Shown in pieces: positions 3,496-62,015 of a stretch of DNA of 64,000 bases. Source of the DNA: Amoebophrya sp. A120. Lineage: Eukaryota > Protista > Dinoflagellata. The stretch covers positions 1,108,564 to 1,172,563 of the forward strand of contig CAJINV010000005.1 in the NCBI GenBank assembly GCA_905178155.1. Reading direction: 5' to 3'. Numbering within the stretch: the stretch's first letter is position 1; each line of letters opens with the position of its first letter. The notes beneath the pieces were generated by a model, which was not told where the DNA came from, made no database searches, and saw only the letters and a program-made list of their open reading frames with translations. The translations under genes and the position numbers were made by a program.

Positions 3496-3686
3496 AAACA
3501 AAAAGAAAATTTTTCTAGAAGAGACACGGCGCGTTTTGTGCTGCCTTTGTTCAAATGTGAGCGCCGGAAGATGCATCTTCTAGCACCATCTGTTTCTGGG
3601 TTCGGGCGGTAGTGCGTTTCTTTCTGGACAGTCTGGACCGAAGAGCAGTCTTGTAAAGTGGTAGGTGTAGCTCGTAACTCGAAACG

Positions 3687-32343: not shown

Positions 32344-35136
32344 ATGGGCACCGACGAGGAAAAGCGCAACGTGATTCCCTTCGACCCCTTCTCCTACACG
32401 GAGCACTTTTACCCCGTCGATGAGGTCCTCTCTTGCCTCCAAAAGGCCGTCCGCCGCGGCCAGGCGGACGCCGCGGCGTTCTGGGCGGGTGAGTTACACG
32501 TATCCCGGCTTGGCGCAACGGCGATGCACCGGATGCAAATCATGGCGGTCGAGGACGTCGGGATCGCCGCGCCGGAGTCGGTGGAAGTGGTGGCGACTGT
32601 GCGAAACCAGTACTTGAAGGCAGTGGTGACGAGTAAAACCGCGGACGACGAGCAGGCGGCAGATGACGACGCGTGCCGGATCTGCATGGCTTGCGCCGTG
32701 TTTCTGGCGAAAAAGCCGAAGACGAGGACGAGCTGCATTTTAATCAGCTGGATGCAGGCCACGTTTCACTGCCTGTACGATCGATTTTGTGACAACAAAG
32801 ACGCGGGGTATCGGCAGAGGGCGGAGGTGATGAACAGCGGAAAAAATATGAAAGATGGTAAGCCGCAGCAGCCTGTAATTTCCGAAGACGCGGAGGTGAT
32901 GAACCGCATGACGGTAAATGCCAACGTGGACGAGCAGGTGGAAAACGAAAAAACGGACGAGCAACTCGCGTTTGAGCACACCGAGCAGTTCCGCAAAAAC
33001 TACGACGCGCTGGTGAAAGCGGCTTGTCACAGCCCCGACCCCTTGCAGCCACTGACGACGAGACTGGCCAATTTTCAGAAGTGGCTCCGTGACAACGTCC
33101 CGCGGAACGCGATGCTGAGCTCCGGGCTGAGCGGCACACCCACGCCGGAAGAATTGCACATCGAAAGGGAGTTTCTGCAACGGGAACAAGTGATTTTTCT
33201 CTCCGTCTACACGTGCTTGGCGAGGAATGGAGCGTCGGAAAATGATACGGAGCACCGCGACCAGCTGATGTCCGTTCTGATCCGGAGCATCCCGAAAGCG
33301 AAGGTGCGGAACTACGCGCAAACCTTGCAGAGACTCTCCCGGCGCGAGATGCAGACGTGCGCAAAGATGAGCTTGAACCAAATACTGCTGTTTACGACCA
33401 GGTGGCCGTGGGTATTACCGTCGGACGGGGGGAAGACCAACGTGGAGGAAGCGAAGGGCGCGGGGAGGACCATGCTGCAGGAGTTGCTGCACGCGGATGG
33501 AGAAATGCAATTGAACTTGAATGTATGACAGTGAACACAGAGTTAATGCGTTCTGGTGTTGAAAAGTTTGCAGGTTTTCATGTTGTAGTTCCCGGATTAC
33601 AGTAGTCCGTCGGTGCATGTGACTCAGTAGTTGTGGTATCGAACAATTAAAACGACGACATGGATTGAAAATCAAGCAAACAGCGCTGCACGTCACCAGA
33701 CCACTTTTCCTCCCGTCAAAACGCACCAGCGATCCGTCCAAAATGCAATCCGCGGACGGCCAAGCTCCGTCGAGAAAACAAGACACGAGTATCGAGCACT
33801 TCGTGGCGAAAAATGCGCCCTCGGAAAGGTTGAAAATCCTCGACGCACTGAAGCTCAAACGCGTCGACGCCGACGCGCGGCTGATGAAGGTCCCGCTCTA
33901 CTGCCTGGACCAGCACACGCGACGCGGGTCCGGCTACCCGCTGCACCTGGAAAAGGGCGAGATGCTGCTGCGCTTCAAGCCGCTGATCAATTGGTCAACA
34001 AAAGAATGGGAGAACACCCACGCCGACATTTCCAAGATTCTCCGCGAGGATCGGAAAAACGTCGCGGCCTTCTTTTTCGAGAACGGCGCCATCGTCGCGA
34101 GAGAGACCTTCCCCGGGCCGCCCTTCAGTCGCGGGGGCACGAGTGTGATTCTTTCCCGGGGCGGGGAAAAGCAGGCAAGTGGTGACAAGAACTCCGGCAG
34201 TGGGGCCCCGCAGCTGTCCTGGATCGACGAGGTGGTGTGGCGGAGTCCGTGCCTAATATCCCGCTATTACGTCACCGCGACCACGACCAGCAAAGCGGCC
34301 AACGCGGCCACGAGCCAGCGGGAGTTGAACAAGCTGATTGCCGGCGTCGAAGTGGACCCGACGGAAAATTTCTTGAAGAACACGCTCCGCGTGCAGACGA
34401 GTTTGAACACGGCAAAGGAGGACGACGCGGGCGTGGTGGACGAGGATTCGCTCGTGAAGCCGCCCTATGAAATGCAAAAATGTCTGGGTCTGGGAGGATG
34501 GAACTTGTGATGCGTCCGGTGGGTCACACAAAAATCTGTGTTGCGTGATCACCAAAAGTTGTCCGTTTTTGACCAACATGAGCGGGAGTGTCTCATGCAG
34601 GATAGGCATGATAGAGAATTCGCAGAATCTGTCATGCTAGGTCCTGCATTCCAGACCTCACGAGGCATGGAAAATATGCATGACAAGTGTGCATTCTTCC
34701 AGACCCAGACATTTTTGCATTTGATACGCCCCCGGCGGTCCCCGTGGATCCCTTCTACCACTTGGCGAGGCTGTTCGCGGTCTGGAAATCCGAGAACAAA
34801 ATCGTGTTCAAGAAAGAGGAGGAAATCATCTTAAAAGCGGTTTTGGCCCAGCAGGAAAAGCAGAACAAGAGGAGGTCCAAGGAAGAACAGACGTTGCAGG
34901 AGTCGATCTCTCTGTCGAATTCAGCGTTTTCCGGCGCGGCGAAAGGACCGATCGACGCGCGGCCCAGTGCGGTGTTCGAGAAACACCGGCAGTACTTGTC
35001 GAAGTTGCCGGCGAATCGGAGTGCTGGCGGTACAACTACTGGTTCGCCGAACAAGGACGGCGGGGGTGAGGCGGTGGGGGAGGATCTGTCCATTGCGAAG
35101 AAATTGAGGTGGAATAAGGGGGGAAAAACAACGTAA
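32344..35136 (+). CDS. Protein with RarA/MgsA C-terminal-like helical domain and no visible AAA+ module; intron about 33523-33676 plus introner 34466-34726
   Basis: SCLQKAVRRG...AAAFWAGEL...RMQIMAVEDVGIA and VPLYCLDQHTRRG motifs; frame restored across the element (VKPP|PAVPVDPF). Confidence 0.7.
34466..34726. mobile_element. Introner, TIR type 1, TSD cgccc
   Basis: tatgaaatgcaaaaatgtctgggtctgg...ccagacccagacatttttgcatttgata; cgccc at 34461-34465 and 34727-34731. Confidence 0.93.
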
Positions 35137-35659: not shown

Positions 35660-38600
35660 ATGAAGACGGCCGCCTGCAGTGGTTTGAAGATTCAGCGGCA
35701 TTCCGCGCCGTCCTCTGCTCTGGCGATACAGCAGCAGCTACATCGTCATTGGCCCCGAAGAGCACATTCTGCTGGACGACCGCAGGAGGTACTAGAACAC
35801 CGTCCGTTTTCTACAGCCACCATCGATTCCACGACGAGTGGGGCAGCCTCTAGTTCCTCAAGTAGCTGCTCTCCTGCCTCCTCTTCCACTTCCAGTCCGC
35901 AACACCAGCGCACCAACACTGCCGCCTATGACGCCATCCAAACCGGGTACCTGCCCGGCCAAGGCACGCCGGAGAAACTCCTGCCGCCCTCCGGCACGTT
36001 ACCCGGGTCCAGTGGCGAAGCCTTTCCGCGGTACAGCGGTTATGTGGTCCGTCAAAGTAGCTTCCGTGAAACTTTTAATCGAAGAGCAGAGTTTAGAGGT
36101 TTAAGCGTGAGAAGGCTTAATTTGAGAAATCGGATGCTTTGAGATTTTAGCGTTTAAGCATTTGAGTGCTTAATTTAAGAACTCGGATATTTTTGAGTTT
36201 AAGCGTTCGAGTGCTTAAAATAAGAAAACAGCAGATTGAAATTTGCGCGAGCAAATTTGAATTTGCTCGCAGGTTTTTGAAATTTGCTCCGGAGCTTCTG
36301 CAAGAAGTCTAGAAATAGCGACTCGAACGCTTAAAGTCACCGAAAAAGAAGGAGTCGTTTAGCCATTCGGATGCTTAAATGAAGAGAATTTTTGCAACCG
36401 CCCGAGCAAATTTAAAAAATCGCAGAGCAAATTCCAATTTGCTCACGCAAATTTCAATCTGCTGCTTCCCTATTTTAACCCTGCGAGCCGTTATTTGCCA
36501 ACTTTGTGAAGCTGCTTTGAGTCATTCGAATGTTTTATCGGGGGCGACGAAGCAAAGGGAAAGAGCACAGACAGAGCCAAGACGCTCCGGGGCGCTTTTG
36601 TTAAGTGCCTGCAAGCTCCGCGCAAAACTGTCGCTAGCGTCGTGATCTCAGCAGATCGCGACGCCGGGCTCGCAGGCACTTAACATACACTTTTGCGGGC
36701 AAATTGCCCCAGGCGTCGCGATCTGGAGGGATCACGACGCCCACGGCGGTTTTGCGCGGGGTGGGCACTTAACAAAAGCGCCGCGGGACGCTTTGGCTCT
36801 GTGCTCTTGCACCGGCGGAGCTTTTGTTTCCCAGGGTGCGAAAGCTCTTTGTCTCTCGAGCAACACCAACAACACTCGCGCTCGGTCGCGGTAGATATAG
36901 CGTTTAGGCCTTCGAGTGCTTAAATTCACGGAAACGCAGACTGCAATCTGCGTGAGCAAATTTGAAATTTGCTCTGGGCAAATTCAAATTTGCTCACGCA
37001 GCTGCACAGACAAGCAATCAGTTTAGCCATTCGAATGCTTAACTGCTTGAAAATAAACAATCATTTTAAGCATTCGAATGGCTAATTGACTGGTTATCTT
37101 TGAAGCTGTGTGAGCAAATTTGAAATTTGCTAAAGCAAATTGCAATCTGCGTTTCCGTGAATTTAAGCACTCGAATGCTTAAATTGCGACTTCTTAGTTT
37201 AGGCATTTTAATGCTTAAACCTTATGAACGCGATTTCCTAGATTAAGCATTCGAAGGCTTAAAACAAAGAATGTGTTGCGCGATTAAAAGTTTCACAGAA
37301 GCTGCGGGCCTTTCCGCGGTACAGTGGCGCCGCACTGGCGGACGTGATCCAGCAGTTTCAGTTCGTGAAAAAGCGGGGGCACGACCGGTATTTCAAGCAG
37401 GAGGAGCCGAAAAGCGCGTGCCAAGACCAGAACCACCGGGTGCCGTTAAGCCCCTGGCTACCGGAAACCGGGGCGTCGGTTTTGAGCAGTCCCTGCTACA
37501 ACAAGGAGGTGGACAAGCCGATCGAGGAAATTTTGCCGCCAGGTTTTGATTTTCTGGATTGAGGGACGTGCTACATTTTTTTTGGTTGTATTGCAGGATC
37601 AACATGACAAGATCACTCTTTTTTGGGGGTTCAGCATGAGAGAGAATAAAAACACATTGATCATTCTTTACTTTCCAAGGTGTGAACGAGAATTCCGGCC
37701 GCTTCCTGAAGGACGATGTGAAAGACGCCTACCACGAGTGCTGGACGGTGCACGGCGGCATGGTGATTGGTGCGGACCAATTCACAAAAAACGACCACGA
37801 CCCGCTGCCGGCGTACAAGGGCAAGTTGATTGAGGAAGACTTCGAAGTTTCGGGTGTGACGGGCTCGATCGTCGCACGGAAGTTCAAGGGCATCGACCGA
37901 CCCGGCGGCGGGGTCGCGGACGGACATCCAGAGGTAGGAAGGGTTAGTTTGTTGAAAATAATGAGTTGTGCTTGGTATAGTTGTAGGTCTGTGTGAGCTC
38001 GAGCACGACAAAGTGAATACCAGTAATTCGTCCTGCATGAGTAGAAAACTATGCTCGAAGGTCGCTCCGGGCTGGTTCCAGTTTGAAAACCGAGAAGGGC
38101 GGAAGTGGTATCTGCACCCTTGCTATGGAGAGGGAAGACAAGGGGAAGTTCTGTACAACTTGTGATGTTGCTGACAAAGGGACAAGTTAAACAGTTTGGT
38201 TTATTCTAAATCTTAAGTGGTTTCTTTGCGTTTGCACATGCAAGATTGATCCGCATCACAAGCTGCACCAGAAGTCTTTGATTTTTCAACCTGACACCTC
38301 GTCGGGCCGTTCGCAGTGGAAGCACCCGGTGAGTGGCGAAGTGGACAACTCACCGATCAGCTGGTATTACAAACGCCCCGCCGACAACGGCCTACCCGGC
38401 CGCCCCTGGTTCGCCTACATCCCGAGGTTACCCTGGCACATCAAGACGCTGAACCAGGACCGGATTGTATCGCCCTTGCGCGCGAAGGCGCGGTGGTGGG
38501 TATTCAAATTGGTTGGTGTTGTCCACAGGATTATCTTTTTGTGCAGCATAACGGAAGTAGAGCATCAACTACGTCAACAAGCAAACCGCAACTACATTAT

Positions 38601-44560: not shown

Positions 44561-47500
44561 ATGTCGACGTCCATCGGGCCGGGCGTGATCGAGGACGAGC
44601 AGGCGGCGCTGCTGTTCGGAGGGGGCTCCACCTCCGTTGGCGGTTCTCGGGGATTCCGGCCGCCGAAATGGGGCCGGCGGACTTCGCTCTGCGGGGTGTT
44701 CGTCGCGGTCGTTCTCGCCTTCCTATCCGGGGTACTCGTCACGAAACACTTCTTGACCGCATCCACATCTGAGGATCACGACAAGCCGAGCTTTTGCGCG
44801 AGTTCTACTGCTCCGTCATCTTCCCCTGCAGATGCTGCTGCAATTTCGTCCAAGCATTCCACGTCTGGCACAACTGCCGAAACTTCTCAAAAAGAAGCCG
44901 TGAAGATCGGTCCGGTGGAGGAGGTCGCAGTCGGTGAAAAACAAACGACCCGGCTGGTGGAGAGCGCGGAAAAGGTAAAAGTCCCCGCCCGGAAACCGCT
45001 GATCGTGAAAACGCTGAGCAAAGCCAACGCGCAGAAGAAGAAAATGGAAGACACACGGAAAAAGCTGCTTGCCGCGGCGCCGGGCTCGTCCTTTTTGCAG
45101 GACAACTTCCTGTATGCATTGCAAAAGTATCGTACCCGTATAAATGCATATACAAATTTTCTCAGCATGGAAAATGTAATTTGTAAAAGCGGATTTGTAG
45201 CGCTAATGCATGCCTCCAATTACTTTTACTAGTACTACGAGTGCGATACTTTTGCACAGGATATCCTGGAACCCGGCGGCTTTGACCCCGATGCGGTGTT
45301 TATCCTATGTAAAAACGTTCCCACCACATAGCCAAGAACAAGATGGGGAACCGGCTAGATAAATCCACAAGGTTTGGCTGTTTTGCATGACAAACTTGGA
45401 CTCGTAGTGTAGTACTGTTTTAAATAGCTGAGCAGCATCACGCATCTAGTATACCGCTCCGATTGGAGCATGACAAATTCCAAAACACGACTAGAAAATG
45501 CTTCTCATGAGGCTCCGCATGGGAAACATGCTCAGCATGCAGATTTGCGTATTATACAGCTATGGTGTGCGAACGTTTTTAAATACGATAGCGTTCGGCT
45601 CCCTGGTGGCCAAGTACCTGGACGGCCCCGCGGTGGAGCAGACGAGGAGCAATCTGCCGCAGGCGCATATGGAAGCGTCAGGTTTGAAATCGCCCAAGTT
45701 GAAATTAGTTTGTAATGCATAAAATGCAAGGCATGAACATGAAGTGCCTGTCTTGCCGGGATGGCAAGTGAGGCAGATTGTGAGCCGGAGCAGGGTTTGG
45801 GATAGAACTGCTAAAGGAGCATGACAAAAGCAGTCTTCTGTGCCCAAACAGCATGACAAATTGGATTCCGGTGCTTCGAAAATTTGTCATGCGCCGCTTG
45901 GTTATTGGGCTTCCAACTGGTATCCATTCTATGCATGACAAATCGTTTCAACTTTGTTGATTTTAAACCTGACGCTTCCATAGCGCACGCGGACGTGGTG
46001 AAGTTTTTGCAAAATACCTTATCCTGTGCAAAAGTATCGTATTCGTACTAATCGCAGTCATGCATTACAAATTCTGTTCTCAATGTAAATCCGCATTACA
46101 AATTTTATTTCTCATGCTGAGGGAATTTGTCATGCATTTATACGAGTGCGATACTTTTGCATTCCATATACCTTTTCGGGGAACGCCCTCGGGCGGGCCA
46201 TCCTCGAGCTATGCATTGCAAAAATGTCTGGGTCTGGAAGATTGCAACTTGTCAAGCTGTCTTTGAATTTCAAAACAATCTGTATTGCGTGACCAGCAAC
46301 AGAACTCCCGTTTGTGTTACGCGCCGGAGAGGGCATTTCTCATGCGGAATAGGCATCAGGAAGCCCTCTAAAAATCTGTGATGCTAGACCATACATTGCA
46401 TGCGTCATGGATCATACAAAATATGCATCACAAATCCCAGAATCGTCCAGACCCAGACATTTTTACAGTTGATACGAGCAAATGCATGACAAGTTTGAAG
46501 CTGGGTCGACCGAAACCGATGTTGCCGCACTTCCGTGTGCGTACGGCCAGTCGCTCGAAGTGTATTCCACCAACTTCGGAGTGCGCAAAGACGTGGAAGT
46601 GCATTGCGACATCGCCGAATTTCACTTTACCAGTGACGCGGCAAAAGTGTATTTCGGGACCCAGCTCAGGAAGGAAGTCGCAGCCATGGACACGGATCAC
46701 GATGGGTTTCTGTCCGCGGCAGAAATCAATGATGAACAGTGCGAACTGCTGCAAGCCGACCATCTATATGGCGACGATGACGGGAAACTTACGGTCGAGG
46801 AAATGGAGAGGGCCTGTCGCGACATTTGTATGCCGGACTCGCCTGTTTGGAAAGGCGAAGAGGAGGAGTTCGTTCGGCATGTCTGCCACTGCTGCCCGCC
46901 CCACATCCAAGACACTTTTTTTCCGTACTTCGACGCCTGGCTGAGCACGACCACAACTTCTACAACCACCGCTGCGCCAGTCGTGCTATCCGACGAAGAC
47001 GAGCTTGCCGCCATGGACACGGATCACGATGGGTTTCTGTCCGCGGAAGAAATCCATGACGATCAGTGCGACCTCCTAAAAGCCGATGGCGACGACGATG
47101 GGAGGATTACACTCAAGGAGATGTCTGAAGCCTGTCACAAAATTTGTGTGCCGGGCTCGGAGGCTTCGCAGATGGAACCCGAGCTCGTGATCCTGCACAT
47201 CTGCCACTGTTGCCCGCCGAGCATGCAAGAAGAGTTTTTTGCTGACTATTACGCTAAGCGGAACAACAAGAAAGAGGATACCACCGACGACGACGATGAA
47301 CTCGCAGCCATGGACACGGATCACGATGGGTTTCTGTCCGCAGACGAAATCCATGACGAGCAGTGCGACCTGCTGAAAGCCGACCACCAGTATGGCAACG
47401 ATGATGGGAGAATTACTCTCCAGGAAATACACGACGCCTGTCACGACATCTGTGTCCCGGACTCGTCTATTTCGAAAACCGAGGATCCGCAGATCGTTCG

Positions 47501-50500
47501 GGCTATCTGCCACTGCTGCTCGCCGCACACAAAGGAAGCGTTTTTTCCGTACTTCGACGCCTGGCTGAGCACGACCACAACTTCTACAACCACCGCTGCG
47601 CCAGTTGTGCTATCAGACGAAGACGAGCTTGCCGCCATGGACACGGATCACGATGGGTTTCTGTCCGCGGAAGAAATCCATGACGATCAGTGCGACCTCC
47701 TAAAAGCCGATGGCGACGACGATGGGAGGATTACACTCAAGGAGATGTCTGAAGCCTGTCACAAAATTTGTGTGCCGGGCTCGGAGGCTTCGCAGATGGA
47801 ACCCGAGCTCGTGATCCTGCACATCTGCCACTGTTGCCCGCCGAGCATGCAAGAAGAGTTTTTTGCTGACTATTACGCTAAGCGGAACAACAAGAAAGAG
47901 GATACCACCGACGACGACGATGAACTCGCAGCCATGGACACGGATCACGATGGGTTTCTGTCCGCAGACGAAATCCATGACGAGCAGTGCGACCTGCTGA
48001 AAGCCGACCACCAGTATGGCAACGATGATGGGAGAATTACTCTCCAGGAAATACACGACGCCTGTCACGACATCTGTGTCCCGGACTCGTCTATTTCGAA
48101 AACCGAGGATCCGCAGATCGTTCGGGCTATCTGCCACTGCTGCTCGCCGCACACAAAGGAAGCGTTTTTTCCGTACTTCGACGCCTGGCTGAGCACGACC
48201 ACAACTTCTACAACCACCGCTGCGCCAGTTGTGCTATCAGACGAAGACGAGCTTGCCGCCATGGACACGGATCACGATGGGTTTCTGTCCGCGGAAGAAA
48301 TCCATGACGATCAGTGCGACCTCCTAAAAGCCGATGGCGACGACGATGGGAGGATTACACTCAAGGAGATGTCTGAAGCCTGTCACAAAATTTGTGTGCC
48401 GGGCTCGGAGGCTTCGCAGATGGAACCCGAGCTCGTGATCCTGCACATCTGCCACTGTTGCCCGCCGAGCATGCAAGAAGAGTTTTTTGCTGACTATTAC
48501 GCTAAGCGGAACAACAAGAAAGAGGATACCACCGACGACGACGATGAACTCGCAGCCATGGACACGGATCACGATGGGTTTCTGTCCGCAGACGAAATCC
48601 ATGACGAGCAGTGCGACCTGCTGAAAGCCGACCACCAGTATGGCAACGATGATGGGAGAATTACTCTCCAGGAAATACACGACGCCTGTCACGACATCTG
48701 TGTCCCGGACTCGTCTATTTCGAAAACCGAGGATCCGCAGATCGTTCGGGCTATCTGCCACTGCTGCTCGCCGCACACAAAGGAAGCGTTTTTTCCGTAC
48801 TTCGACGCCTGGCTGAGCACGACCACAACTTCTACAACCACCGCTGTGCCAGTCGTGCTATCAGACGAAGACGAGCCTGCAGCACCATCAAGCTTTCTGA
48901 ACAAACAGCACGGGGGCTTTCCGAAACACACTGTCAGAGCGCCAGGTGTGCAATCAGACAACCACGAAGATCTTGTAGCCATTATGGACACGAACCATGA
49001 TGGCTTTCTGTCCGCAGAAGAAATAAATGACGACCAGTGCAACGTGCTAAAACTCGATCAACAGTCTGGCGACGGTGAGAGGAAAATTTCACTCAAGAAG
49101 TTGGATTACGCCTGTAGCGATTACTGTACCCCGGGTGCGGCTGGTGTGGAGGATCTTGACGAGGACGTGCTCTTGGAAATCTGCCACTGCTGCCCGCCGG
49201 AAATGCAAGAAGCATTTTTCCCTTGGTACTATGCGAACCGTGAGTACTTGAAGGCGCAGGAGGACCTCGATTTTGCGAAAATGGATGCTGACGATGACGG
49301 GCGGCTCATCGCAGACGAGATCCATGACGGAATGTGCGACGCGGGAAAAGTCGACCACGAATGGGGCGACGGCGATGGGCAACTTACGGTGAAGGAAGTG
49401 CACACTATGTGCGATGCGGTGTGCGTGCCGGAATCCGCCCTCGAAACGCTTCCCGAGGAGGAACTGATGGCCCTGTGCCACTGCTGTCCGAAAGGTATGC
49501 AGGGGCGTTTTTTTGCGCACTATTACGGAAGAAAAAGCGGCGCTTTTGCGGGGAATCAGGCCGCAGAGGCCAGAATGGCGCTGGACTACTTGGTCTATCG
49601 CAACCCGGGAGATGTTGACCACGAAGATCTGCAAGTCGCTTCGAGCACCACGACCTCGAACGACAGCGAAGGGGCTGCAGCCCCGTCGGCCTACCAATTT
49701 TGCAGCGTAGTGCACATGAACGAGGCGCCGGTGCGGGTTTGTGGCCGTTTCGACAAGGATGCAAACGCAATCTCCGTGACTATCGCGCGCTGTGTATCCT
49801 GTGCAAAAACGTCGTCCCCACACCATAGTCAAGTTGGGAAATCTGCTAGAGAAAGCAGCCAGCTTTGTTGTTGCGCATGACAAGTTTGGCCTCGATTATA
49901 GCTAGCTCAGCAGCGTCACAGGTCTAGCGCATCGCTCTAATTGGAGCGTCACAAATTCCGAAAAACGAGTACGAAAATTCCTAGCATCATGGGGCTCCGC
50001 ATGAGAAATATTCTCAGCATGCAGATCCATCTGCATATACAACTATGGGGTGGGGACGTTTTTACATAGCATACTACGTGGAGAAGGTAGTCGCGTGGGA
50101 CCTGACCGACTGCCCGCAGCAGAAAGCCACCTGGCAGAACCTGTTTCGGCAGACGTCTGAGAAAACCTACGACAGTTTTTATGGACTGCAAAAATGTCTG
50201 GGTCTGGAAGATTCTGACACTTGTCATGCACGTTTTGCATGAGCCATGATGTCTGTGATGCATCCCCTAGCAATACAGTTTTTTTGAGGGCTTCTTGATG
50301 CGTATTCCGCATGACAAATGCCTTCTCAGCGTAGCAAAAATTGCCTTCCTTTTGGTACTCATGCAATACAATTTTTTTTGGAATCCAAATGCAGCACCAT
50401 CACAAGTTGCATTCTTCCAGACCCAGACATTTTTACATTTGATAGTTTTTACGATCACGCGTTCGAGCCGCAGTGCAACCTGGTGTCCACGTATGCAAGA

Positions 50501-53096
50501 AAGGAACTGTGTAAGTGTAACTCCGTAAAAATGCAGAACATGCAACAGTAGAGTTACACCTGTCATGCCACACGACAAGCATGAAGTCCTCGTTTCATGT
50601 GTGTTTTATCCCCTCATAAGGCACCCATGACAGGTTATTTTCTCTGTCATGTAGAACAAATTTGTGATGCTGTCAGGGAAAGAAAGTTACACTAACACAG
50701 TTTTTTTATTGGATACCACGGACCGATCCGCCCTGCTGGAGAACGGCAGGCCCGACGTGTATCCTGAGTAAAAATGTCCCCACCCCAGAGTTGTCATGCA
50801 GATTTGCGATGACAGGAAGACTTGTAATGCGCATCTCCATGAGAGGCAATACCAGTCGTGTTTTGGAATTTGTGATGCTGTGAACAGGATGAGGAGGTGG
50901 ATTTGTTATGCGGCTTCCCTTGCTAAACTGCACTACAATACAGCCTGCAACTTGTCATGCGTGACTCACAAAACTCCTAGGTTTGTGGTGCTAAGTCCCC
51001 AACTTGACTCTAGTGTGGGGACGTTTTTACTCAGGATAACGTGCAGAAGAGCTTCAACCTGGTCCTGGTGCCGTTCGGCTGGAAGAGCCGCGCGCTGTGG
51101 AAGCAGCACACGGAGAGGCTGGTCGAGCAGCTGGAGCACGACTACCCGCCGCTGAACGCGCGCGAGATGGGCGGCCGGTTGAATTGGCACCGGATCGACG
51201 CCTGGCCGAGGTTTGTGGGTTCGGGGGTCTCCGACTACGAATGCAACGACGTCTATCCAGGAAAAAACACCCATCCCCATCCAATTTGTCATGCAAAACA
51301 TGCATAAAATACACTATTTGTCATGCAAAAAATGGATGGGGATGGGTGTTTTTTCCTGGATAACGTCACGGGATGGGACTTCGTCAACTGCTTCTTCGAC
51401 GCGGACCGCGACTGGTACCGGATCGCACGCTTCGCGAACGACCAGTGCAATCGCGAGTACCAGGCCCAGGGTGGATTGGCGCACATGACGGTGCTCGTCC
51501 AGGCACGCATGGATCACCGTTCCGAGAGCGACAACGCGTACGGATTCGCCATGATGTCCTGGAACACCCTATCCTAAGGAAAAACGTCCCCGCCCCAGAG
51601 TCAAGATGGGGACTTTGCAACACAAACCTCGAAGTTTTGGGAGTCATGCATTACAAATTGCAGGCTCTAGTGTAGTAGTTCAGTTTAGCAAGGGAAGTCG
51701 CATTACAAATCCATCTGCTTAATATCCTGTTTACAGCATTACAAGTTCCAAAACATGATCGGAAATCCCTATCATGTGGATGCGCATTACAAATGCTTTT
51801 GTGCTTGCAGATCTGCATGGCAACTCTGGGGCGGGGATGTTTTCACACAGGATACACCCTGCTGACCCCGGCGGTTCCGGGGTGGAGCTACAAGACCGCG
51901 GCCTTATCAAATGTGAAAATGTCTGGGTCTGGAACGATGTAACTTGTGATGCGCATTTCAGAACACACAAAAATCTCTGATGCATAGGCAGCAAAAGCTG
52001 CTCACTTTCTGTCACCAAAGTGGGGGACTTGCCATGCGGATTCGGCATTGCGGACGCTTCTCGAAACCTGTGATGCAGCTTCCACGCCAGACCTTCTGTG
52101 TCATGCAGAAACAGCATGACTCTTCCAGACCCAGACATTTTTACATTTGATAGGCCTCCACGGTCGCCCACGAGCTGGGCCACGCCCTATTCGGCCTGGA
52201 AGACGAGTACCATTGGACGACAACCAGCACTTTCTTCCCGAATTGCGGCAACGAAAAGTCGCAGTGCAACCGCTGGCTCGACCTGATCGACGCGGGGCTT
52301 TCCGGCTGCTACAAAGGCAGCTGCCAGGAGGAGCAAGGCTACATCGACGGGCCGGAGGTGGACAGCGTCATGGCCTGGTACGGCCGCCAAATGTCGCACA
52401 GCCAGAAGCGGATCTCCTGTTGCAAGTACTTCAAAGTGCACAAGTTCACGCCTGCCTACTGCGACGTGTACAACCGGACGTATCGCAACAGGACCCTGCA
52501 GCGCCCCGTGAACGTCACGGTTCAGCAGGACGGCTGGGTGGTGGACGAAAGTAAGCACAATCTGGCCGGCTACTACAAGGGCCCGGTGCCCTTGCCGCTG
52601 CAGCAGAAGCTGATGGAAACCAGACTGGCGCCGAGGGTGGTATGGCGTTCTCAAATGTTACATTCTCAACTGTTACATGATTTGTCATGCAAAATTTAAA
52701 TTGCAAGCAGAATCGATGTGATTAAGCTGCTGCGCTGCATGATAAATTCTAGAGGAGCCAAACAGGCTGAGAATCTCTCTGTGCCAAATCTGTGATGCGA
52801 GACGTGCAAGGTCATCCCTTTTACTTTTGTCATTCGCGCATCACAGATTCATGTAACAATTGAGAATGTAACAGTTGAGAGCGCCATACATGGACTGGGC
52901 CACGGTTTCCGCCGACGGCGTGGTTCAGCTGGACATCACCTTGAATCCCAAGTCCGAGTTTTATCCGGGCCAGGATGTGGTGCTCGACCTGGCCGGCTTC
53001 TGCGACGACCCGGGGCACTGGCGCAACCAGGAGCTGGACGTGAAAGCCAGTCATCCGCTCTTGGGAAAAGTCGAGTACCCGGACGTGAAAAACTAA
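44561..53096 (+). CDS. 1787-aa membrane-anchored protein: N-terminal TM, nine EF-hand/Cys modules, C-terminal HExxH zinc metallopeptidase (M64-like); 13 introner introns
   Basis: Removing 13 elements plus one TSD each leaves 5364 nt in one open frame; TM LCGVFVAVVLAFLSGVLV; DTDHDGFLSAEE loops; TVAHELGHALFGLEDEY...PNC...DSVM. Confidence 0.88.
45113..45263. mobile_element. Introner, TIR type 3, TSD tcctg
   Basis: tatgcattgcaaaagtatcgtacccgta...tacgagtgcgatacttttgcacaggata. Confidence 0.92.
45301..45590. mobile_element. Introner, TIR type 2, TSD gtgtt/gcgtt
   Basis: tatcctatgtaaaaacgttcccaccacatag...ctatggtgtgcgaacgtttttaaatacgata. Confidence 0.9.
45668..45982. mobile_element. Introner, TIR type 4, TSD gcgca
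   Basis: tatggaagcgtcaggttt...aaacctgacgcttccata. Confidence 0.93.
46020..46168. mobile_element. Introner, TIR type 3 (inverted relative to 45113), TSD tacct
   Basis: tatcctgtgcaaaagtatcgtattcgta...tacgagtgcgatacttttgcattccata. Confidence 0.92.
46210..46474. mobile_element. Introner, TIR type 1, TSD cgagc
   Basis: tatgcattgcaaaaatgtctgggtctgga...tccagacccagacatttttacagttgata. Confidence 0.93.
46916..48876 (+). repeat. Coding tandem repeat, 624-bp unit, about 3.1 near-identical copies (two EF-hand/Cys modules per unit)
   Basis: Identical shadow ORFs at 47076/47700/48324; very few substitutions between units. Confidence 0.95.
49795..50073. mobile_element. Introner, TIR type 2, degenerate TSD ctgtg/ctacg
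   Basis: tatcctgtgcaaaaacgtcgtccccacaccatag...ctatggggtggggacgtttttacatagcata. Confidence 0.88.
50180..50444. mobile_element. Introner, TIR type 1 (inverted relative to 46210), TSD gtttt
   Basis: tatggactgcaaaaatgtctgggtctggaaga...tcttccagacccagacatttttacatttgata. Confidence 0.93.
50492..50715. mobile_element. Introner, TIR type 5, TSD ccacg
   Basis: tatgcaagaaaggaactgtgtaagtgtaact...agttacactaacacagtttttttattggata. Confidence 0.9.
50760..51038. mobile_element. Introner, TIR type 2, TSD acgtg
   Basis: tatcctgagtaaaaatgtccccac...gtggggacgtttttactcaggata. Confidence 0.93.
51254..51362. mobile_element. Minimal introner (109 bp), TIR type 6, TSD acgtc
   Basis: 30-bp perfect TIR tatccaggaaaaaacacccatccccatcca. 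Confidence 0.94.
51570..51854. mobile_element. Introner, TIR type 2 (inverted relative to 50760), TSD caccc
   Basis: tatcctaaggaaaaacgtccccgccccagag...ctctggggcggggatgttttcacacaggata. Confidence 0.92.
51905..52152. mobile_element. Introner, TIR type 1, TSD ggcct
   Basis: tatcaaatgtgaaaatgtctgggtctggaa...ttccagacccagacatttttacatttgata. Confidence 0.93.
52641..52888. mobile_element. Introner, TIR type 7, degenerate TSD ggtgg/catgg
   Basis: tatggcgttctcaaatgttacattctcaactgttacatga...tcatgtaacaattgagaatgtaacagttgagagcgccata. Confidence 0.9.
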
Positions 53097-54731
53097 AACT
53101 CGGTTGATGCAGCAGTCTCACCGGTGATTTCTAGTGCTTAAGTCGAAGAACAATTGCAGTAGCTTGAATTATAGCAACCAATACAATTTGAATTTCAATA
53201 CCATGATTATGCTCTCTCTCGAGTTTTCAAAAAAGCGAAACGAAAGTAAGTATCATCACGACAATTTATCGTTGCGCATCAACAAAATGAATGTACTAGA
53301 GATTCCAATAGAAGGAGATGACTCTCTAAGCTTTCCTGTTTATTAAATTTGTCTTTATGTTCGAGCATATGGATTTTGTGCCACTGACTTTCATCAATTT
53401 AACGTTTCACTCCGATCGTTTCAGATTTTTCTCGGGCTGAGACTCATTCTGCAAGCCGAGAGAACGTAATTCAGACTTGATTCACTAGCAAAGTGTATCC
53501 AAACATCAAAATGATAATTGCATACTGTAAAGATATGGAATTTAAAATTGTAACAACCTTGTGCTGTGGATATGGTGGGCCGTCATCAAAAATCTCTTAT
53601 GTTTACTAGCACGATGAGCACGACCACACAGAGGACAGGAAGTAGCATCAAACTAAATGTATCCCACAACTATGGTGCATCTGAATTTCAACTTTCCTGC
53701 AGTTAGGCATGACAAATTGATATCTACTTACTGCAAATTAATAAGAATTGGAACGAAGCTCCGAAATAAAGAACAGGCAAGGCTATTAATGCCGGGACGG
53801 GACAGACAACTGCTAGCTTAATGTACAATGCAGAAGTGAAAAAATCATAATAGGTAGCCCTCTTCGCTTCTGGAGGTCGTCAATAGCGACCCGCAAGACA
53901 CGGACCCCTGGAGAGTGCTTGCTAGAGGGCTCGCCAAATAAACCGCTTGCTAAAGTAGTTTTATCCACGCGCTTTCTCGTTCAAAAAAACAGCGCGGTTT
54001 TTTCGTATCGCGTGAAAGTAGACGAAGAAAGGTCGGTCTCGTACTTCATCTGTACCGTTTCGGTATATACGAATCAATAAACTTCGGTCTCGTGGTGCGT
54101 CCCCTTCCCTGGTTGTCGTCAGAGGCGGAGCTGCCCTGTTCTTGTGGTAGTCGAAACTTGATTATGCATATCTTGGTTGTGCAGCTTTAGCTTAAGGTCG
54201 GTAATATCAGTTCGAAGTTTTTCGTCCACTCCTTCGTGTTTGCATACGTTCCGCTTAGTTGACGTTCGTTCACTCGTTCTTTTTTTCGTGGATGTTTCTT
54301 CCGTTCATGCTAACAAATGTGCGAACAGATTTTTTTCCACACGATTTCAGGCAGAACTATCTTGAGACGACGTTTTTTCCCCTTAATTCATCTGCCACCA
54401 CCCAATTTTTTTTCTGTTTCGTTTTTCGCAAAAATCGGGATAGAATTAAAGAAGACGGTTTTTTCTCTCAAAAAGCTCATTTACGGTCTCTTGGACTACG
54501 AGGCATATCCTGCCTCGTAGTTTTTTTTTGAAAAAGAATATCAAAAAATACAAATTGCAAGAAAGGCCCGCACTAAATTGCAAAGCCCGAAGATCATCTC
54601 AAAAGAGCAGTAGCAGCTTTCCGGCATATCCTGTTCGCTTAAAATTCCCCCAGACAAGTCAAAGTTTAAACAGTCAAAGTTTAAACCATCACACCTCCAC
54701 TCCTCTTCGTGCGCAAGAAAGACACACGAAA

Positions 54732-56991
54732 ATGGCTTCCTTCAAGTCTATACCGGTGATTACGCCCTACACCTACAGTTCGAACATGGGTCCGGGCAGC
54801 GAGCACGGGGGTCCCTTTTACCCGCTCGGGCAGCAGTACCACCAGCCTGACATGCTGGCCGACCAGCTGAAGAAGGAGCGAAATCCCCCGCGAGCGGTGA
54901 TCACGGGCGTGAACACGGACTTCAAGCTGGACTCCTCTCGCCGGCTGCGGTGGAACGACCCAAAGTCCGGGGTCGTCGACCAGTGTACCATGTACACCTA
55001 CGGGCAGCCGGACTCTCACCGCTCCTGCCTATGCATTGCAAATATCGATCTGGGTCTGGAAGGTCGTTGCAAATTGTCATGCTAGTACGGTTGGATCGTG
55101 CAAAATAAAAATTTCAATTTGTGTTGCATGGCTACCAAAAGTAGTTCGTTGTCCACTTTTATTAAACAAGTTTAGAGGCAGCTTATTCATCTCATGCAGG
55201 GGAGGCATGATAGAGATCTCACAGAATCTTCTGTCATGCTCATGGGCCATGAAATAAAACCAGCATGACCACAAGTCTCGCTATTCTCCAGAAGATCCAG
55301 ACATATATTTGCAGTTGATACTGCGTCACCAGCTACAACAAGGACGGCCTCACGATGAACTCCTTGTCCCACTACAACAAGGTCGGCGCCAAACACCTGC
55401 AAGCCCAGTCGCGGTCCAGTCTATCAAAAGTAAAAATGTCTGGGTCCTCTGGGAACTTGTGATGCTGGGTAGCGTCTCATGATGAGGCTACAAATGCTGG
55501 CTCAGCATGACAAGTTTCTGAGCTCCTCGGTGTTGCCTATTCTGCATGACAAACTGCGTAGTTTCTGCATCACGGAAAAGCGGAGCTGCTCTTGGGTAAC
55601 GTGCATGACAGATCATTTAAGAGTCATGCCAGACAAGCATGACAAACATGAACAATTCTTCCAGACCCACACATTTTTACTTTTGATACCGTCCCATCCA
55701 CTCCTACTTCAGCGAACCGAGAAGAAAGGTGCCGGACATCGGAACCAAGGTGTGGGATAACTTCGGCATCGACGGCCACATGAAGGCAACGTCAGAGGAG
55801 ATCGGCAACTGGTCGCCGTTGTGGTACTTGATAGTGTGAATGAAATTCTCAACTTCTTATTTCGGCGTGCTTTAAATTTGATATTGTTTCCTCTGCGCTT
55901 GCTTTCTCTTCCAAACGAAAAACGTTGTTGATCCGCAACTTGATAGTTGCCCTCGGTATTAGTGCACTTGAAGAAGTTGTCGCAAAATCGTTTATTGAGA
56001 CGGCGATCCTCGGCCTCGGGCTAAAGCTAATCCTGAAGAAGTTCTTACAGGGTTCTCATGCGAGAATCTGTTGAAAAAAAATAACCACCAGGTACCGCGC
56101 CGTGAACGACATGAACGTGTATGCCAACCTGCGACCGGACACCATGAAAGCCCTCGGTCTCGAATACGAGGAGCCGGGCGTCAGATACGGCATGATCAAC
56201 GGGGAGTTTCTTCCCAAGGTCGAAAAAGTGAACGATTCCGCGCGAAGTTCGGCGTGGAGCGAGAACCACAAGTACGTGGGGTATCCCAAAGAACCCTCCA
56301 TGCAGGCCCGGGCCTACTACGGCAACGACGCGCGGACCAGCTTCGCCTTGGCCGACGTCCAGAAGTACATGTCACCGCTATGCCACTGCAAACCAATTTG
56401 TCAGTCGTGTTTGGGTCGGGATTATTTCTGGTCATGCGAGTTTATGTAAAAGTACTACAGAAACTTCAACAGGATCTTTATCTTTTGTGATGGTACGAAC
56501 ATAGATAGGACAAGGAGCATTTTTGAGGGTTATTTCTTCTTGTTTTCTCATGCTGGGCGTTGTACCAATTGCAATAATTTTCCAGACGACATAAAGATAC
56601 CCCTGAAGTTGTAGTTGTCAAAACAATCGCAAACTTGTCATGCGGTCGTGGACCACAGAAAGCCTTTGAATATTTCCACTCTGAATAGCTTGTGCACAGC
56701 AACACAACTAGAACTACGCTGCATCCTTTACCCAGACCCAGCAGACAACATGTTTGCAGTGAATAACCGGTCTCCATCGCGAACTCGGACCCCACGTCTC
56801 TCCTGCGCGCACAGAAGAACCGGGTTCGGGAGGAGGTTTTGGCGCAGGTGCGCCGGGCACCGCAGTACGGGAGCCACCGGGGGAGCGGGGGCGGGAGGGC
56901 ACTGTCCAGCGGAAGGACCGCGTCGACAACGCACTCCACACCGAGGGCCGGCGACTTCATGCGGAAGTCCGCCTCCACACCGAGAATGTGA
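54732..56991 (+). CDS. Hypothetical protein with three introners and one GT-AG intron (55824-56091)
   Basis: Frame restored across elements: HRSC|VTSYNK, SRSS|PIHSY, YMSP|VSIANSD; stop at 56989-56991. Confidence 0.8.
55030..55320. mobile_element. Introner, diverged TIR type 1, TSD ctgcc/ctgcg
   Basis: tatgcattgcaaatatcgatctgggtctgga...tccagacatatatttgcagttgata. Confidence 0.87.
55422..55688. mobile_element. Introner, TIR type 1, TSD cagtc/ccgtc
   Basis: tatcaaaagtaaaaatgtctgggtc...gacccacacatttttacttttgata. Confidence 0.9.
56379..56765. mobile_element. Introner, strongly diverged type 1-like, TSD accgc/accgg
   Basis: tatgccactgcaaac...gtttgcagtgaata with a residual cagacccag motif. Confidence 0.8.
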
Positions 56992-57541: not shown

Positions 57542-58400
57542 ATCATTTCAGTTGGATCAAGTAGAGGATGATTGTGACAGAACTCCTTACATGGTAGGGA
57601 GAATGATCGACACTGTAGCCTCGCTACAGTTGTGTCGTCAACATGTATTTTACATAAATCGCAAAGGTTCAAGTTCTCGCTCTTCTTCCAAGAATCAAGA
57701 TCATGAAGGATCTCATGAAGTCCCCAGATCTCAACCTCAAGGTCAAAAATCTTTACACAGAAGAATCTTCTGCTGTATTCCTGGACTGTCGGCACACGAA
57801 CGATCCAGCGATCGCCGCGAGCTGAACCCTGTGGTCCTCGCCAAAGTTGATCTATTTACGGACGAGCTCACGAACACATCGATGCTTTTGCTGGTGGGGG
57901 TTTCCAGAAAAGTCCCGCTTTCCTGATCTGCTCGTCATGTTGATCACTTCTTGGCCAACATGTGCTAAATGCAGAAATAATCAATTAATATTCAGAATAA
58001 ACTAAACCACTCCAGCACAGCTACACAAATTATCACCCTACTTAGAGGCTGAAATAGTCTTCTTGTTTGCAGACATAAGCTTCACTGTAGTACTATACCA
58101 AAGTAGGTGTAGGATTTTGATTTTGTTCCATTTGTTTTGTGAAAAACCAAAAAGCTTCTTCACTAGGAGAGTAGACTCCACTCTTCAAGTCGTACCACAT
58201 AAATACCAAAAACCACCAACAATAATCTCTTGAGAAAAAAATTGAGTTGCCACCCGACTCTCTCCATCAATCCGCTGTAAGATTTGGGAATCAATCGTAA
58301 TTTTTCCTACACCGCTGTAAGATTTACCTTCTACTTTTGCAATAGTAGACGAAAAAGGAATAAAACCAGAATACGTATTGATCATTGTGTTTACCTGAAA
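57542..58400 (+). repeat. ~850-bp direct repeat, copy 1 (upstream of the lipase gene)
   Basis: Colinear with 63181-63993 from atcatttcagttggatcaagtag to atcattgtgtttacctgaaa. Confidence 0.93.
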
Positions 58401-58449
58401 TAACTTGTTGCGAGCCGTTTTCTTCTATTTACAAAAAGAAAAAAAAGAC

Positions 58450-61400
58450 ATGAGCAAAGAACAAAGAATGTGTCTCCGGGCGCAGGCAATGAAAAGGAAA
58501 AGCTCAACGACGACCTGTCAAGCCATGATTGTCTGGGCATTAGCGTTTTCTTCTCCTCTTGCAGGCGTGCGTGCTTTCCGGTTTCAGCTAGAAGAAGCGA
58601 AGCTCCAGCCCTTCGGCACTACCGCTCACCGTCATTATTTCGATCGCAAGAACGGAAACAACAAGGACACCAACCTGACCGGTGATGAAGGTTTTGCTGA
58701 GAAACGCGAGATGACAAAGCAGCTCGAGCAGTGTCCTCGTCCCATTGATTGGGACCCTGCGTACGAGATATTTTCCGTCAGGGACATTGCGGAAATGTTA
58801 GCGCTATGGATTGCAAAAGTGTCTAGCTCTGGAACAAGGTTGAAACCTGTGATGCGCATTTCAGAATGCAGAAAAATCTCTCATGCATAGGCAGCAAAAG
58901 TCGCCCACTTTCTGTCACAAAAATCAGGGATTTGTCGTGCGGATTCGGCATTGCGAACGCTTCTCGAAACCTGTGATGCTAGAGCTTCCATGCTAGACCT
59001 TCTGTGTCATGCACAAGCAGCATGATTCTTCCAGACCCAGACATTTTTACATTTGATAAGCGCGACAGCTAAAAATGGGCGGGGTCGACGCAATGATGCA
59101 GGCCTTGGCGAAGAGGCTCCAGAAGTTCTCGACCAAGTCCATGAATGTGGAGTACCATGACCGAGCCGTGTTCGAAGCCATGGTGGGAAAAGCTGCAGAC
59201 GATGATAAAGCGAACGGCAAAACGGACCTTGGCAACCTCGGGGCCTACGTGACGAAACTGGCGGCCAAGTGCGCGTGGGTGAAGTTGGTGCGGGGAAGTT
59301 CGGGGTGGCAGGAGTGCTTCATATCCTGAGTAAAAACGTCCCCATACGAGAGTCAAGATGGGAAATGTGCTAGACAAAGGAGCCAGCTTTGGTTGTTTCG
59401 CATGACACGTTTGTACTCGTAGTGTAGTGCTGTTTAGCTAGTTCAGAAGCATCACTTACCTAGCACATCATGCTGATTCTAGCATCACAAATACCAGAAC
59501 ACGACGAGAAAACGCGTCTCATACAGCTCCGCATGAGAAACTTTTTGGCACGCAGATTTGCGGGACAACTCTGGCGTGGGGACGTTTTTACACAGGATAC
59601 TTCACGAAGGAGATTTACAAGGTGTACCAGGAAGCCACTTGGCAAGACGCGAAATGCTACGCGGAAGCGGCGGAACGATGGATCTCTAAGGGAGGACTGT
59701 CGGCTGGTGGTGAGGACGAACTACGCAACATTACCAGCGTGGACCAGATTCTCGCGTCCGGCGTGGCAGGTGTTGCCAGCAGCAGTGGCACAACTACAAC
59801 TTCTGGCGCAACAACTGCAAGCTCAAGCACGGTGTTGAACAACAAGCCGAGTACAACTGTTGAAACGAAGAAAGCGGAACTGCTTCGCTCGTTCAAAAAT
59901 GCAGGGTTGGTGCACGACAGTGCTGCTCTGCCGCCGGAGGACCTAGCGAGGAAGATTTGCGAGATGGAGCTTGTAGCACCGGAAATTTGCCAGAGTGATC
60001 ATCAAAAAATGGACGACGACGAGGATGTTAAGGAAGAAGCAGAAGCGCTCGATTCTAACGTTGGCAGGAGGACTTCTTGTTCAGCGGACGTTGAAACAGC
60101 CGGCTCTGAAGAAGAGTCCGACAGTGATGTTGACAACTGCTCGACGGACTCCGTCGAGGCGGAAGGTGAAGAAGGTCGGGTTCTACAGGATGGACCACGT
60201 GGTCCTGGGTCTCCTGCACGAGGATCAGCTGCCACTCCTCTTGCAGATGCCCTCAACCTTGTGAAAGGTCCGCAGAAACGGGCGTCTGCGAAAGCTAAAG
60301 GCTGCATCGAATTCCGATCCGACATGATGAGCCCGCAGTGGATGTTTTTTCTGGACAGTGAAAACAAGCAGGGGTTTCTGACCATCCGGGGTACGGTTTA
60401 CCTTGACGACTGGAATACGAATTTCAACAGCTCGGGGGATCGGGCCAGCCCGGTGTACGCGGAATACAAGCATTCTATGCCCGCCGCAAAGTCCGCGTTG
60501 TCGATGGGTACGAACCCAGAGGAGGAGAAGGAGTTGGGACCCTTTTTGATGCTGCACAAAGGTTTTTACGACCGCGCGGCCACGGCAATCATGGAACTGG
60601 AGGTGGAGTTGTGGAAGCAGAGCAAGAAGATTGCGCAACAAGAACAGCGCGTGGCCGAGGAGAAGATGAGCAAAGACGAAGGAGGTCGTGATGAGGATGA
60701 TGGAGCAGGTACTAGTGGTAGTGAACGTGAACAAACGGTGGAAACCGAAACGGCTCCTGTGATGATCCGCGATTCCACGAGCAACTGCGATCCAGCCGAC
60801 GAGGAAGTACTCGCTTTCGAAAAGCAAGCGGGGACAGAGAGTCACAAAAGCGACGTGTTCCGGAATTTCGCGGAAGAAAAAACTTACCTGGAAAAGCGCC
60901 AAACCAAATTGCCGACCTGCTTTGTCGAATATCTGAAAAAAAACATCGCAACTAAAATCTCCGACAAGCTGTTCCTCCAGGGCCACTCGTTGGGCGGCGC
61001 CGCGGCATTGGTGATTCACCGTCTGAGGGAAAAGTCCGACCTATTGCAAGCGATGACGAACAACTCTGCCGGGAAAAAGATCCACACGAACGCGTTCTCC
61101 GCGCCCCCAATGTTCACGTCCGGGTCGCCGGAGCAGGCAAAGCTGGCTTTTGTGTACCTCGCCACCGGGAAACTCGCCAACTGGGCGCTGGATGTAAACC
61201 GCGTGCTTGCGGGCGACTACCGCTGCTCCTGGCTTGAGGAGCTCGCGACGGAGTTTCCGGACGGTGACTTGAATAAACAGGAGACTATATTGTGGAAGAA
61301 CTCCACGAACCTGTTTTTCAATTTCGACTTTGTGCCCCGGCTCGCGTTCATGAACGTGCAGAAGGAGCAAATTGTCCTCCCGCCCGTAGAGAAAGTTTTC

Positions 61401-62015
61401 TGGCTTCGCGACACCGCGCCCGCGGGGCTGCAAGAAAAGTTGGACAAGTGCGGGAAAAGCTGCAGCAAAACTCTTACCCGCGTCGCTACCGTATTCCGGG
61501 TTCCGCTTTACGCGCAAGCGACGGTCTTGTCGAGTCTAGACCAGATGCTCTCGCCGTATCCAAAGGAATTCTTGCTGGACGCAGTACAGGAACACCAGAT
61601 GCCTACTTACGAACCGCTGTTGGTGGCCTTGTTAGGAGGAAAGAACAGCAAGAAAGATAGCCTGTCTGCTGGTGTAGCAAGTCTTGAAGTGGGGATGAAG
61701 GGTGAAGAGAAAAGCGTCCCTGCTTCTGAGACGCAGAACGTACAAGAATTTGAGCTGGAGCGACCGCGCGGTGAGGACAACGTCGAGAACCTTCTCGCCA
61801 ATAGCAAAAGGAACAGCACTTCTGGAAACAAGAAGGGCTTTCTTGATGAGGTTAAAGAATCTACTGCGGAGGTGGATGATGATGTTGATGACGTTGACGA
61901 GGATAAAAACAGCGAAGAAGAAGACCAAGAACCTGTTGCTTCCATGCCGCTCCCGCCGATCGTTACTCCGGCAGAGTACATGGAAATGACATATGGGGAC
62001 ATGACTATACACTAG
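58450..62015 (+). CDS. Class-3 lipase (alpha/beta hydrolase), probable signal peptide, two introners
   Basis: IRGT...DW, HKGF, LQGHSLGGAAA, FSAPP, DFVPRL, EHQMPTY; frame restored across the elements (MLA|RQLKM, ECF|TKEIY). Confidence 0.9.
58805..59058. mobile_element. Introner, TIR type 1, TSD agcgc
   Basis: tatggattgcaaaagtgtctagctctggaa...ttccagacccagacatttttacatttgata; interior closely matches 51905-52152. Confidence 0.92.
59322..59599. mobile_element. Introner, TIR type 2, TSD cttca
   Basis: tatcctgagtaaaaacgtcccca...tggggacgtttttacacaggata. Confidence 0.93.

Follow-up and report, generated by a model that had tools for sequence, protein, structure and literature searches.

Thirteen introners are the only introns of a predicted EF-hand/M64-type metalloprotease gene in Amoebophrya sp. 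A120

A gene located at positions 44561-53096 (plus strand) of a 64,000-nucleotide stretch of Amoebophrya sp. A120 DNA (contig CAJINV010000005.1, positions 1,108,564 to 1,172,563), hereafter called the window, was analyzed computationally. Very probably, this locus is a single protein-coding gene. The encoded protein would be anchored in a membrane by a hydrophobic segment near its N-terminus, followed by nine calcium-binding EF-hand/CHCC modules and, at the C-terminus, by a cysteine-rich zinc metalloprotease domain of the M64 type, and 13 non-autonomous transposons with terminal inverted repeats (TIRs) would have inserted into its coding sequence. Excision of these 13 elements from 44561-53096 leaves 5364 nt, which read as 1787 codons followed by one terminal stop, without any internal stop. 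Unexcised, the locus shows broken frames on the plus strand and one long open reading frame (ORF). The original prediction for this DNA, made from the letters alone, had described the ORF track as holding only fragments. This is slightly overstated: many broken pieces are indeed present, but an ORF of 1132 aa (46482-49880) is visible without excision. The joined 1787-aa model was built and translated by script, to check the frame and to compare it by local BLAST with P0001, the public protein described below, and with paralog translations. Search and fold tools received exon references or P0001 as input, never the joined model.

Elements were searched as TA...TA-bounded inverted repeats with flanking direct repeats. 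Thirteen elements of 109-315 nt each were found between 45113 and 52888, all with TA at both ends and a 5-nt duplication on the flanks. The element lengths total 3107 nt; together with 13 x 5 nt of target-site duplication (TSD) this gives 3172 nt. TIR/TSD scan and excision reproduced all numbers given earlier (13 elements, 3172 nt, 1787-aa frame). The TSDs are perfect in 10 of the 13 cases, and in the remaining three they are degenerate with 1-2 mismatches (GTGTT/GCGTT, CTGTG/CTACG and GGTGG/CATGG). Based on the inner TIR sequence, seven TIR types were distinguished (A, two elements; B, four; D, three; C, E, F and G, one each). In each of the 13 elements, the two ends agree at 18-26 of their 26 terminal bases, compared with the 8-20 nt or more by which A120 introner elements are recognized. 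Likewise, a 5-nt direct repeat across the exon/intron boundaries is found at 13/13 introns, where 3-5 nt are expected of such elements. For the inverted repeats of A120 families, Farhat et al. 2021 (PMC7789003) give a motif of TAT, seven less-conserved bases and a run of three or more A. Most ends in this gene follow it (e.g. TATGCATTGCAAAA and TATCCTGAGTAAAAA); types C and G have TAT at the start, without a clear A-run. In folding predictions, all 13 elements pair 21-30 of their first 30 bases with the last 40 (z -4.7 to -14.1 versus dinucleotide shuffles).

The elements belong to repeated families. Genome-wide counts were made for types E, G and C and gave at least 966, 1589 and 2386 first-look candidates, respectively, in the 115.5-Mb genome, with closest copies 85-90% identical. 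Judged by these sequence identities, the E, G and C elements of this gene appear to be old-ish members of large families rather than fresh insertions. TIR types A, B and D recur at other loci. Short boxes such as TTGTCATGCA and GCATTACAAAT (compare the GCATNACA box) were seen to recur inside elements of differing TIR type, e.g. at 51284-51305 and 46043-46073.

A protein search with exon 6 retrieved P0001, an 'unnamed protein product [Amoebophrya sp. A120]' of 1163 aa encoded on a 9.2-Mb contig. The first residues, the last residues and the amino acids over all 13 junctions are identical between P0001 and the excised model. The gene had been thought to be hidden; since P0001 shares its start, its stop and its 13 junctions, it is in fact already part of the NCBI annotation of A120. 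The same protein bears out that every intron of the gene is an element: all 13 are TIR/TSD elements, P0001 shows the same 13 junctions, and no further intron is needed. When exon 6 or residues 690-1163 of P0001 were used as query in protein searches, which covered proteins of similar length only, nothing except P0001 itself was returned.

Further support is provided by sequencing runs. Of the words sampled from 49500-53200, a share of 0.45-0.47 is present in runs X1-X4, which equals the exonic share of this stretch (0.466). A transcript-like contig of 3263 nt from the public run X2 matches 49500-49793, 50078-50173, 51039-51248, 51363-51563, 52153-52637 and 52891-53200, contiguously in its own coordinates, with joints 49793|50078, 51248|51363 and 52637|52891. 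Two unlisted gaps of 82 and 46 letters correspond to exons 8 and 9 and to exon 12, respectively, when TSD offsets are counted. The contig is thus contiguous over exons 6-14. Therefore, introns 6-13, all absent from it, are removed as the element plus one duplication, and the EF-hand exon and the peptidase exons lie in one molecule.

In order to define the splice boundaries, every boundary giving the observed mRNA was listed for each intron, in all duplication-equivalent registers. Whichever register is taken, GT-AG ends cannot arise in any of the 13 introns, and their boundaries are non-canonical. GT...AG sites inside the TIRs, such as GTAAGT...CACAG in introner 8 (adding 13 codons), were considered and ruled out, as P0001 and the X2 contig show the loss of exactly the element and one TSD and there is no GT-AG register. 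Introners 9 and 11 (type B) are 81% identical in reverse orientation, and introners 5 and 7 (type D) have an internal identity of 0.74 reversed versus 0.64 direct. Introners 7, 9 and 11 are all gone from the X2 contig. The same element families are therefore removed in opposite orientations, and removal is independent of orientation.

The degenerate TSDs tell which of the two copies is exonic. In all three cases of this gene (introners 2, 6 and 13) the upstream copy stays in the mRNA, which the contig confirms for introners 6 and 13. For introner 6, the possible intron ends are limited to TA-CG or GT-AC. Mapping of P0089, P0021 and P0072, three other annotated A120 proteins, to their loci yielded three more informative degenerate TSDs, and the upstream copy is kept in all of them. 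Altogether, this copy is kept in 6/6 informative degenerate duplications, three of which (two of these from paralogs) limit the shift to 0 or 1. Two further degenerate duplications of P0072 encode the same amino acids in both readings. No TSD with a mismatch at position 5 is among the cases scored, so that shifts 0 and 1 are not told apart. A mismatch at this position (CTGCC/CTGCG) was seen at an element at 55030, downstream of the gene.

The retention of the upstream copy fits a fixed cutting register. We tentatively propose that a non-canonical splicing activity may cut all introns in one register from the element ends, at the first T or 1 nt before it and then 5 or 4 nt past the last base, in either element orientation. 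Each insertion would have made a 5-bp duplication of its target site. The loss of element plus one copy from the transcript restores the frame whatever the length or orientation of the element. The TIRs could form a long terminal stem in the pre-mRNA, by which the exon ends would be brought together.

The protein was examined for domains. The sole strong hydrophobic segment, residues 43-64 with a peak at aa 41-46, is a predicted membrane anchor. Exon 6 scored above the Pfam cut-offs for EF-hand_7 (121 bits) and EF-hand_6 (109 bits), and holds 12 EF loops of the DxDxDG type and nine CHCC motifs. In line with the C-terminal metallopeptidase expected from the original prediction, an HExxH zinc site followed by a DEY motif (AHELGHALFGLEDEY) is encoded at 52166-52210. 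In an alignment of 32 sequences H940, E941, H944, D951 and E952 are invariant, and all invariant family residues (HExxH, DE, six Cys, W, M and R) are kept. The profile of these 32 sequences matches the structures 3p1v (2.3e-15) and 4df9 (2.3e-14) and T. ramosa IgA proteases down to 5.7e-8; a phmmer search of PDB sequences with P0001 alone gave no match. Paralogs (35-48 bits) and homologs (33-51 bits) score above the M64 Pfam cut-off. Comparison of exon 13 with 1.84 billion representatives gave 104 matches, none above 44% identity, several of which pass this cut-off. In the AlphaFold model of P0001, confidence is confined to the C-terminal domain (predicted local distance difference test 70-94; whole-protein mean 49). 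With this predicted domain, 17 of 17 Foldseek matches with E <= 0.001 were M64 entries, followed by metzincins of the ADAM/adamalysin type, and look-alikes in the ESM Atlas are M64 clusters.

Together, profile and predicted fold assign the C-terminal ~300 aa to the M64 (IgA-peptidase-type) metalloproteases, and judging from the conserved residues an active enzyme is plausible. The domain thus resembles the M64 peptidases of Thomasclavelia ramosa (IgA peptidase) and Bacteroides (BF3526, BACOVA_00663) in its HExxH...DEY motif, its profile match to 3p1v and the M64 structures that top the fold search. The A120 protein differs from them in several ways: it is eukaryotic, it has a predicted membrane anchor as well as nine EF-hand/CHCC modules, and a Cys-rich insert follows its zinc site.

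Several points weigh against the account given so far. For introns 1-5 the support comes from the public annotation, for introns 6-13 also from the X2 contig. The assignment of X2 as an RNA run is a guess, although its spliced contig argues for cDNA. Coverage of the stretch by the raw-read RNA runs X8 and X9 was almost nil. The gathering score of PF09471 (Peptidase_M64), 26 bits, is reached neither by exon 13 (19.1) nor by P0001 (15.1). We infer both the role of the hairpins and the splicing machinery. Finally, short contigs cannot count 624-nt units, and a length of 1787 aa is not proven against the annotated 1163 aa.

The last point concerns exon 6, where tandem units of 624 nt (208 aa) occupy 46992-48846. 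Three units that were compared are identical at 622-624 of 624 positions, and a perfect self-match at a lag of 624 extends over 46992-48222. P0001 is shorter than the model by exactly 624 aa, i.e. three 624-nt units, and the corresponding 1872-nt gap of the public model has no TIR and no TSD. Probably, the public protein is 624 aa too short, with three identical units of the repeat taken for an intron. As the cause of the 1163-aa annotation, the collapse of a transcript contig in the repeat region is the likelier one. Alternatively, 1163 aa could be the true product, with three units skipped in the RNA or over-counted in the assembly, leaving fewer EF-hand modules. The exact match of the missing residues to three units agrees with this, and repeats this similar make long-read and transcript assembly both error-prone. 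However, the supposed intron lies wholly within identical repeats, where collapsed contigs mimic a gap, and besides lacking TIR and TSD it is longer than the introns validated by Farhat et al. 2021 (PMC7789003), which measure 40-1000 nt. We regard the shorter product as rather unlikely.

The distribution of the elements is uneven. As stated in the original prediction, the gene is heavily colonized: 13 of the ~18 such elements in the window sit in it (binomial probability 2e-8 under uniform insertion). Five elements lie within 172 nt of coding sequence. Exon 6 (3315 nt) has none, with a probability of 4e-6, or 1e-3 when the three young repeat units are discounted. Candidate causes of the clustering are a local insertion preference, chromatin, or purging from homogenized repeats. 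Insertion may be locally clustered, and the homogenized tandem-repeat exon may be kept free of elements by concerted evolution. Beside another M64 paralog (L021, G000:C12:2504000-2513999, at 2101-6453), eight TA-TIR elements were found in 4.4 kb, so that the present gene is not alone in having a dense cluster of introners.

The frames of the locus are split into many pieces unless the elements are excised, which could point to two separate genes, one for an EF-hand protein and one for a peptidase, or to a dead pseudogene. Both are highly improbable. One contig runs from exon 6 to the stop codon, a single annotated protein spans the whole locus, 1787 codons are open, and the catalytic and invariant residues are intact. 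Hence the earlier view of one gene that is still intact stands, and the two separate genes that would have refuted it were not found.

A search of the A120 genome revealed at least 12 loci with an HExxHxxFxLxDEY motif, some of them in tandem on C2 and C12. One tandem cluster of at least five M64 paralogs was seen at G000:C2:9.726-9.760 Mb (L017, L018, L025, L026). Two paralogs of this region have uninterrupted frames of ~1500 aa, one with weak TSP1 and PAN matches. In order to place the gene among its relatives, a tree of the peptidase domain was calculated (111 rows, unrooted with midpoint only, most relatives without a taxon label). All 13 A120 rows fall into one clade together with four unlabelled rows (support 95 by the Shimodaira-Hasegawa-like approximate likelihood ratio test, SH-aLRT). 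Of these four, two have the same sequence as A120 loci, and P0072, a third one, was mapped to an A120 locus. The sister group of the gene consists of the paralogs at C2:11.54-11.60 Mb (support 99). Only two outgroup proteins are named, both entries from metagenome-assembled genomes (MAGs) of Bdellovibrionota. By its place in this tree, the gene arose by duplication within the lineage.

The closest paralogs align over the sites of introns 9-13 (five sites) within single open frames. Together with the TSDs, these uninterrupted paralogs indicate that introns 9-13 are gains. To this extent the earlier suggestion of an originally intronless gene fits. More generally, the insertions may be gains, made in a paralog that was once uninterrupted and that belongs to a lineage-specific M64 family. 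The earlier suggestion had gone further and considered a horizontal acquisition possible, followed by heavy colonization; here it was weighed as the transfer of an intronless gene from bacteria. The named relatives (the two Bdellovibrionota MAG proteins) and the Atlas clusters of M64 are indeed bacterial, and all introns of the gene are insertions of a young type. However, the gene is nested in the A120 paralog clade, sister to other paralogs, with at least 12 paralog loci in the genome, so that a horizontal transfer of its own is unsupported. In addition, none of the matches among the 1.84 billion representatives exceeds 44% identity, and the protein has a membrane anchor besides EF-hand and Cys-rich modules of eukaryotic style. 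Horizontal acquisition of this gene is thus very unlikely compared with duplication within the lineage. The M64 family as a whole may have an ancient bacterial origin.

Contigs of run X5, which is DNA-like, cross the intron-exon borders (e.g. 49500-50026 and 52129-52668) at a depth like that of unique exons (38-56), and no listed X5 joint equals a modelled junction; DNA therefore keeps the elements. TA termini and exact removal might suggest excision from DNA, as in ciliates, but with these contigs and with the elements present in the genome assembly itself this is scarcely credible. Paramecium internal eliminated sequences share with the elements described here the TA termini, a transposon origin and an exact removal that restores the frame. 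They differ in that they are excised from DNA, whereas the elements of the present gene stay in the DNA and are missing from the RNA.

Introners of Micromonas, Polarella and Symbiodinium carry canonical splicing motifs. The same holds for the elements of Aureococcus (Farhat et al. 2021, PMC7789003). All of these are insertions with TIR and TSD, similar to miniature inverted-repeat transposable elements, that turned into introns. In this they are like the elements of the gene studied here, whereas 0/13 of the latter can be GT-AG introns. The closest match is provided by the introner elements of A120 itself (PMC7789003), which come from the same organism and agree in end motif, 5-nt direct repeats, non-canonical ends, predicted hairpins, multicopy families and RNA-supported removal. 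There is no fundamental difference; what characterizes this gene is that it has no other introns than these elements, 13 copies that represent seven TIR types and lie in both orientations. The three degenerate duplications additionally reveal which copy is retained in the mRNA. A120 has 29,850 repeated introns, corresponding to 68% of the non-canonical ones, in 1,954 families (Farhat et al. 2021, PMC7789003). The claim that all seven TIR types are present in the gene thus holds within this window; more types occur at paralog loci and in the genome as a whole. Many introners per gene are also known: according to Gozashti et al. 2025 (PMC12130899), introners have given rise to 'tens of introns in a single gene' in A120. 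Both the phenomenon and genes of this kind are already published for A120, and there is no departure from published biology here.

Table 1. Exons and introners of the gene at 44561-53096. Coordinates refer to the window; TSD, target-site duplication; z, folding score versus dinucleotide shuffles.
Feature	Coordinates	Strand	Type	Length (nt)	TSD	Remarks
Exon 1	44561..45112	+				ATG at 44561; predicted membrane anchor ~44687-44752 (aa 43-64); N-terminus equals P0001
Introner 1	45113..45263		A	151	TCCTG	Junction agrees with P0001; paired ends, z -4.7
Exon 2	45269..45300	+		32		Excised model and P0001
Introner 2	45301..45590		B	290	GTGTT/GCGTT	Upstream copy retained in protein
Exon 3	45596..45667	+		72		Excised model and P0001
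Introner 3	45668..45982		C	315	GCGCA	At least 2386 first-look genome candidates; closest copies 90% identical
Exon 4	45988..46019	+		32		Excised model and P0001
Introner 4	46020..46168		A	149	TACCT	
Exon 5	46174..46209	+		36		Excised model and P0001
Introner 5	46210..46474		D	265	CGAGC	
Exon 6	46480..49794	+		3315		Nine EF-hand/CHCC modules ~46664-49530; 624-nt tandem units ~46992-48846
Introner 6	49795..50073		B	279	CTGTG/CTACG	Upstream copy retained in RNA; contig joint 49793 to 50078
Exon 7	50079..50179	+		101		X2 contig
Introner 7	50180..50444		D	265	GTTTT	Orientation opposite to introner 5
Exon 8	50450..50491	+		42		P0001; 82 unlisted X2-contig letters fit end of exon 7, exon 8 and exon 9
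Introner 8	50492..50715		E	224	CCACG	At least 966 first-look candidates; closest copies 87-88% identical
Exon 9	50721..50759	+		39		M64-like domain begins here (~50721-52577, in pieces)
Introner 9	50760..51038		B	279	ACGTG	Orientation opposite to introner 11
Exon 10	51044..51253	+		210		X2 contig
Introner 10	51254..51362		F	109	ACGTC	Near-perfect predicted hairpin, z -14.1
Exon 11	51368..51569	+		202		X2 contig
Introner 11	51570..51854		B	285	CACCC	X2 contig
Exon 12	51860..51904	+		45		P0001; 46 unlisted X2-contig letters fit
Introner 12	51905..52152		D	248	GGCCT	X2 contig
Exon 13	52158..52640	+		483		Zinc-site motif AHELGHALFGLEDEY at 52166-52210, then Cys-rich region; all family-invariant residues there
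Introner 13	52641..52888		G	248	GGTGG/CATGG	Upstream copy retained in RNA; at least 1589 first-look candidates; closest copy 85% identical
Exon 14	52894..53096	+				Stop codon 53094-53096; P0001 and X2 contig

Further elements were noticed outside the gene. Downstream genes of the window contain four more elements of types D and B (55030-55320, 55422-55688, 58805-59058 and 59322-59599), and without the elements at 58805-59058 and 59322-59599 a frame of 1024 aa opens at 58399-62012. Upstream, a lone type D element with the TSD CGCCC is located at 34466-34726. A 1.25-kb stretch at 36057-37303 is full of nested inverted repeats of a different kind. At one locus on C12 (L022, G000:C12:2130000-2139999, ~4890-6771), an intron of ~1.9 kb lies between residues 198 and 199 of P0089. 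The ends of this intron are TA, its TIR is weak (19/26) and its TSD is TCCTC; it may be a long or nested element.

The gene mainly confirms the published picture of A120 genes riddled with transposon-derived introns that are not GT-AG. It is now possible to give the 'unnamed protein product' a name, EF-hand-array/M64 metalloprotease; it belongs to a group of at least 12 paralogs. A120 is a parasite, and secreted or surface proteases may act on the host. For intron removal, the gene provides one transcript that loses the same element family in both orientations. Moreover, degenerate duplications fix the exonic copy, and this offers a simple genome-wide route to the cut sites of these introns.

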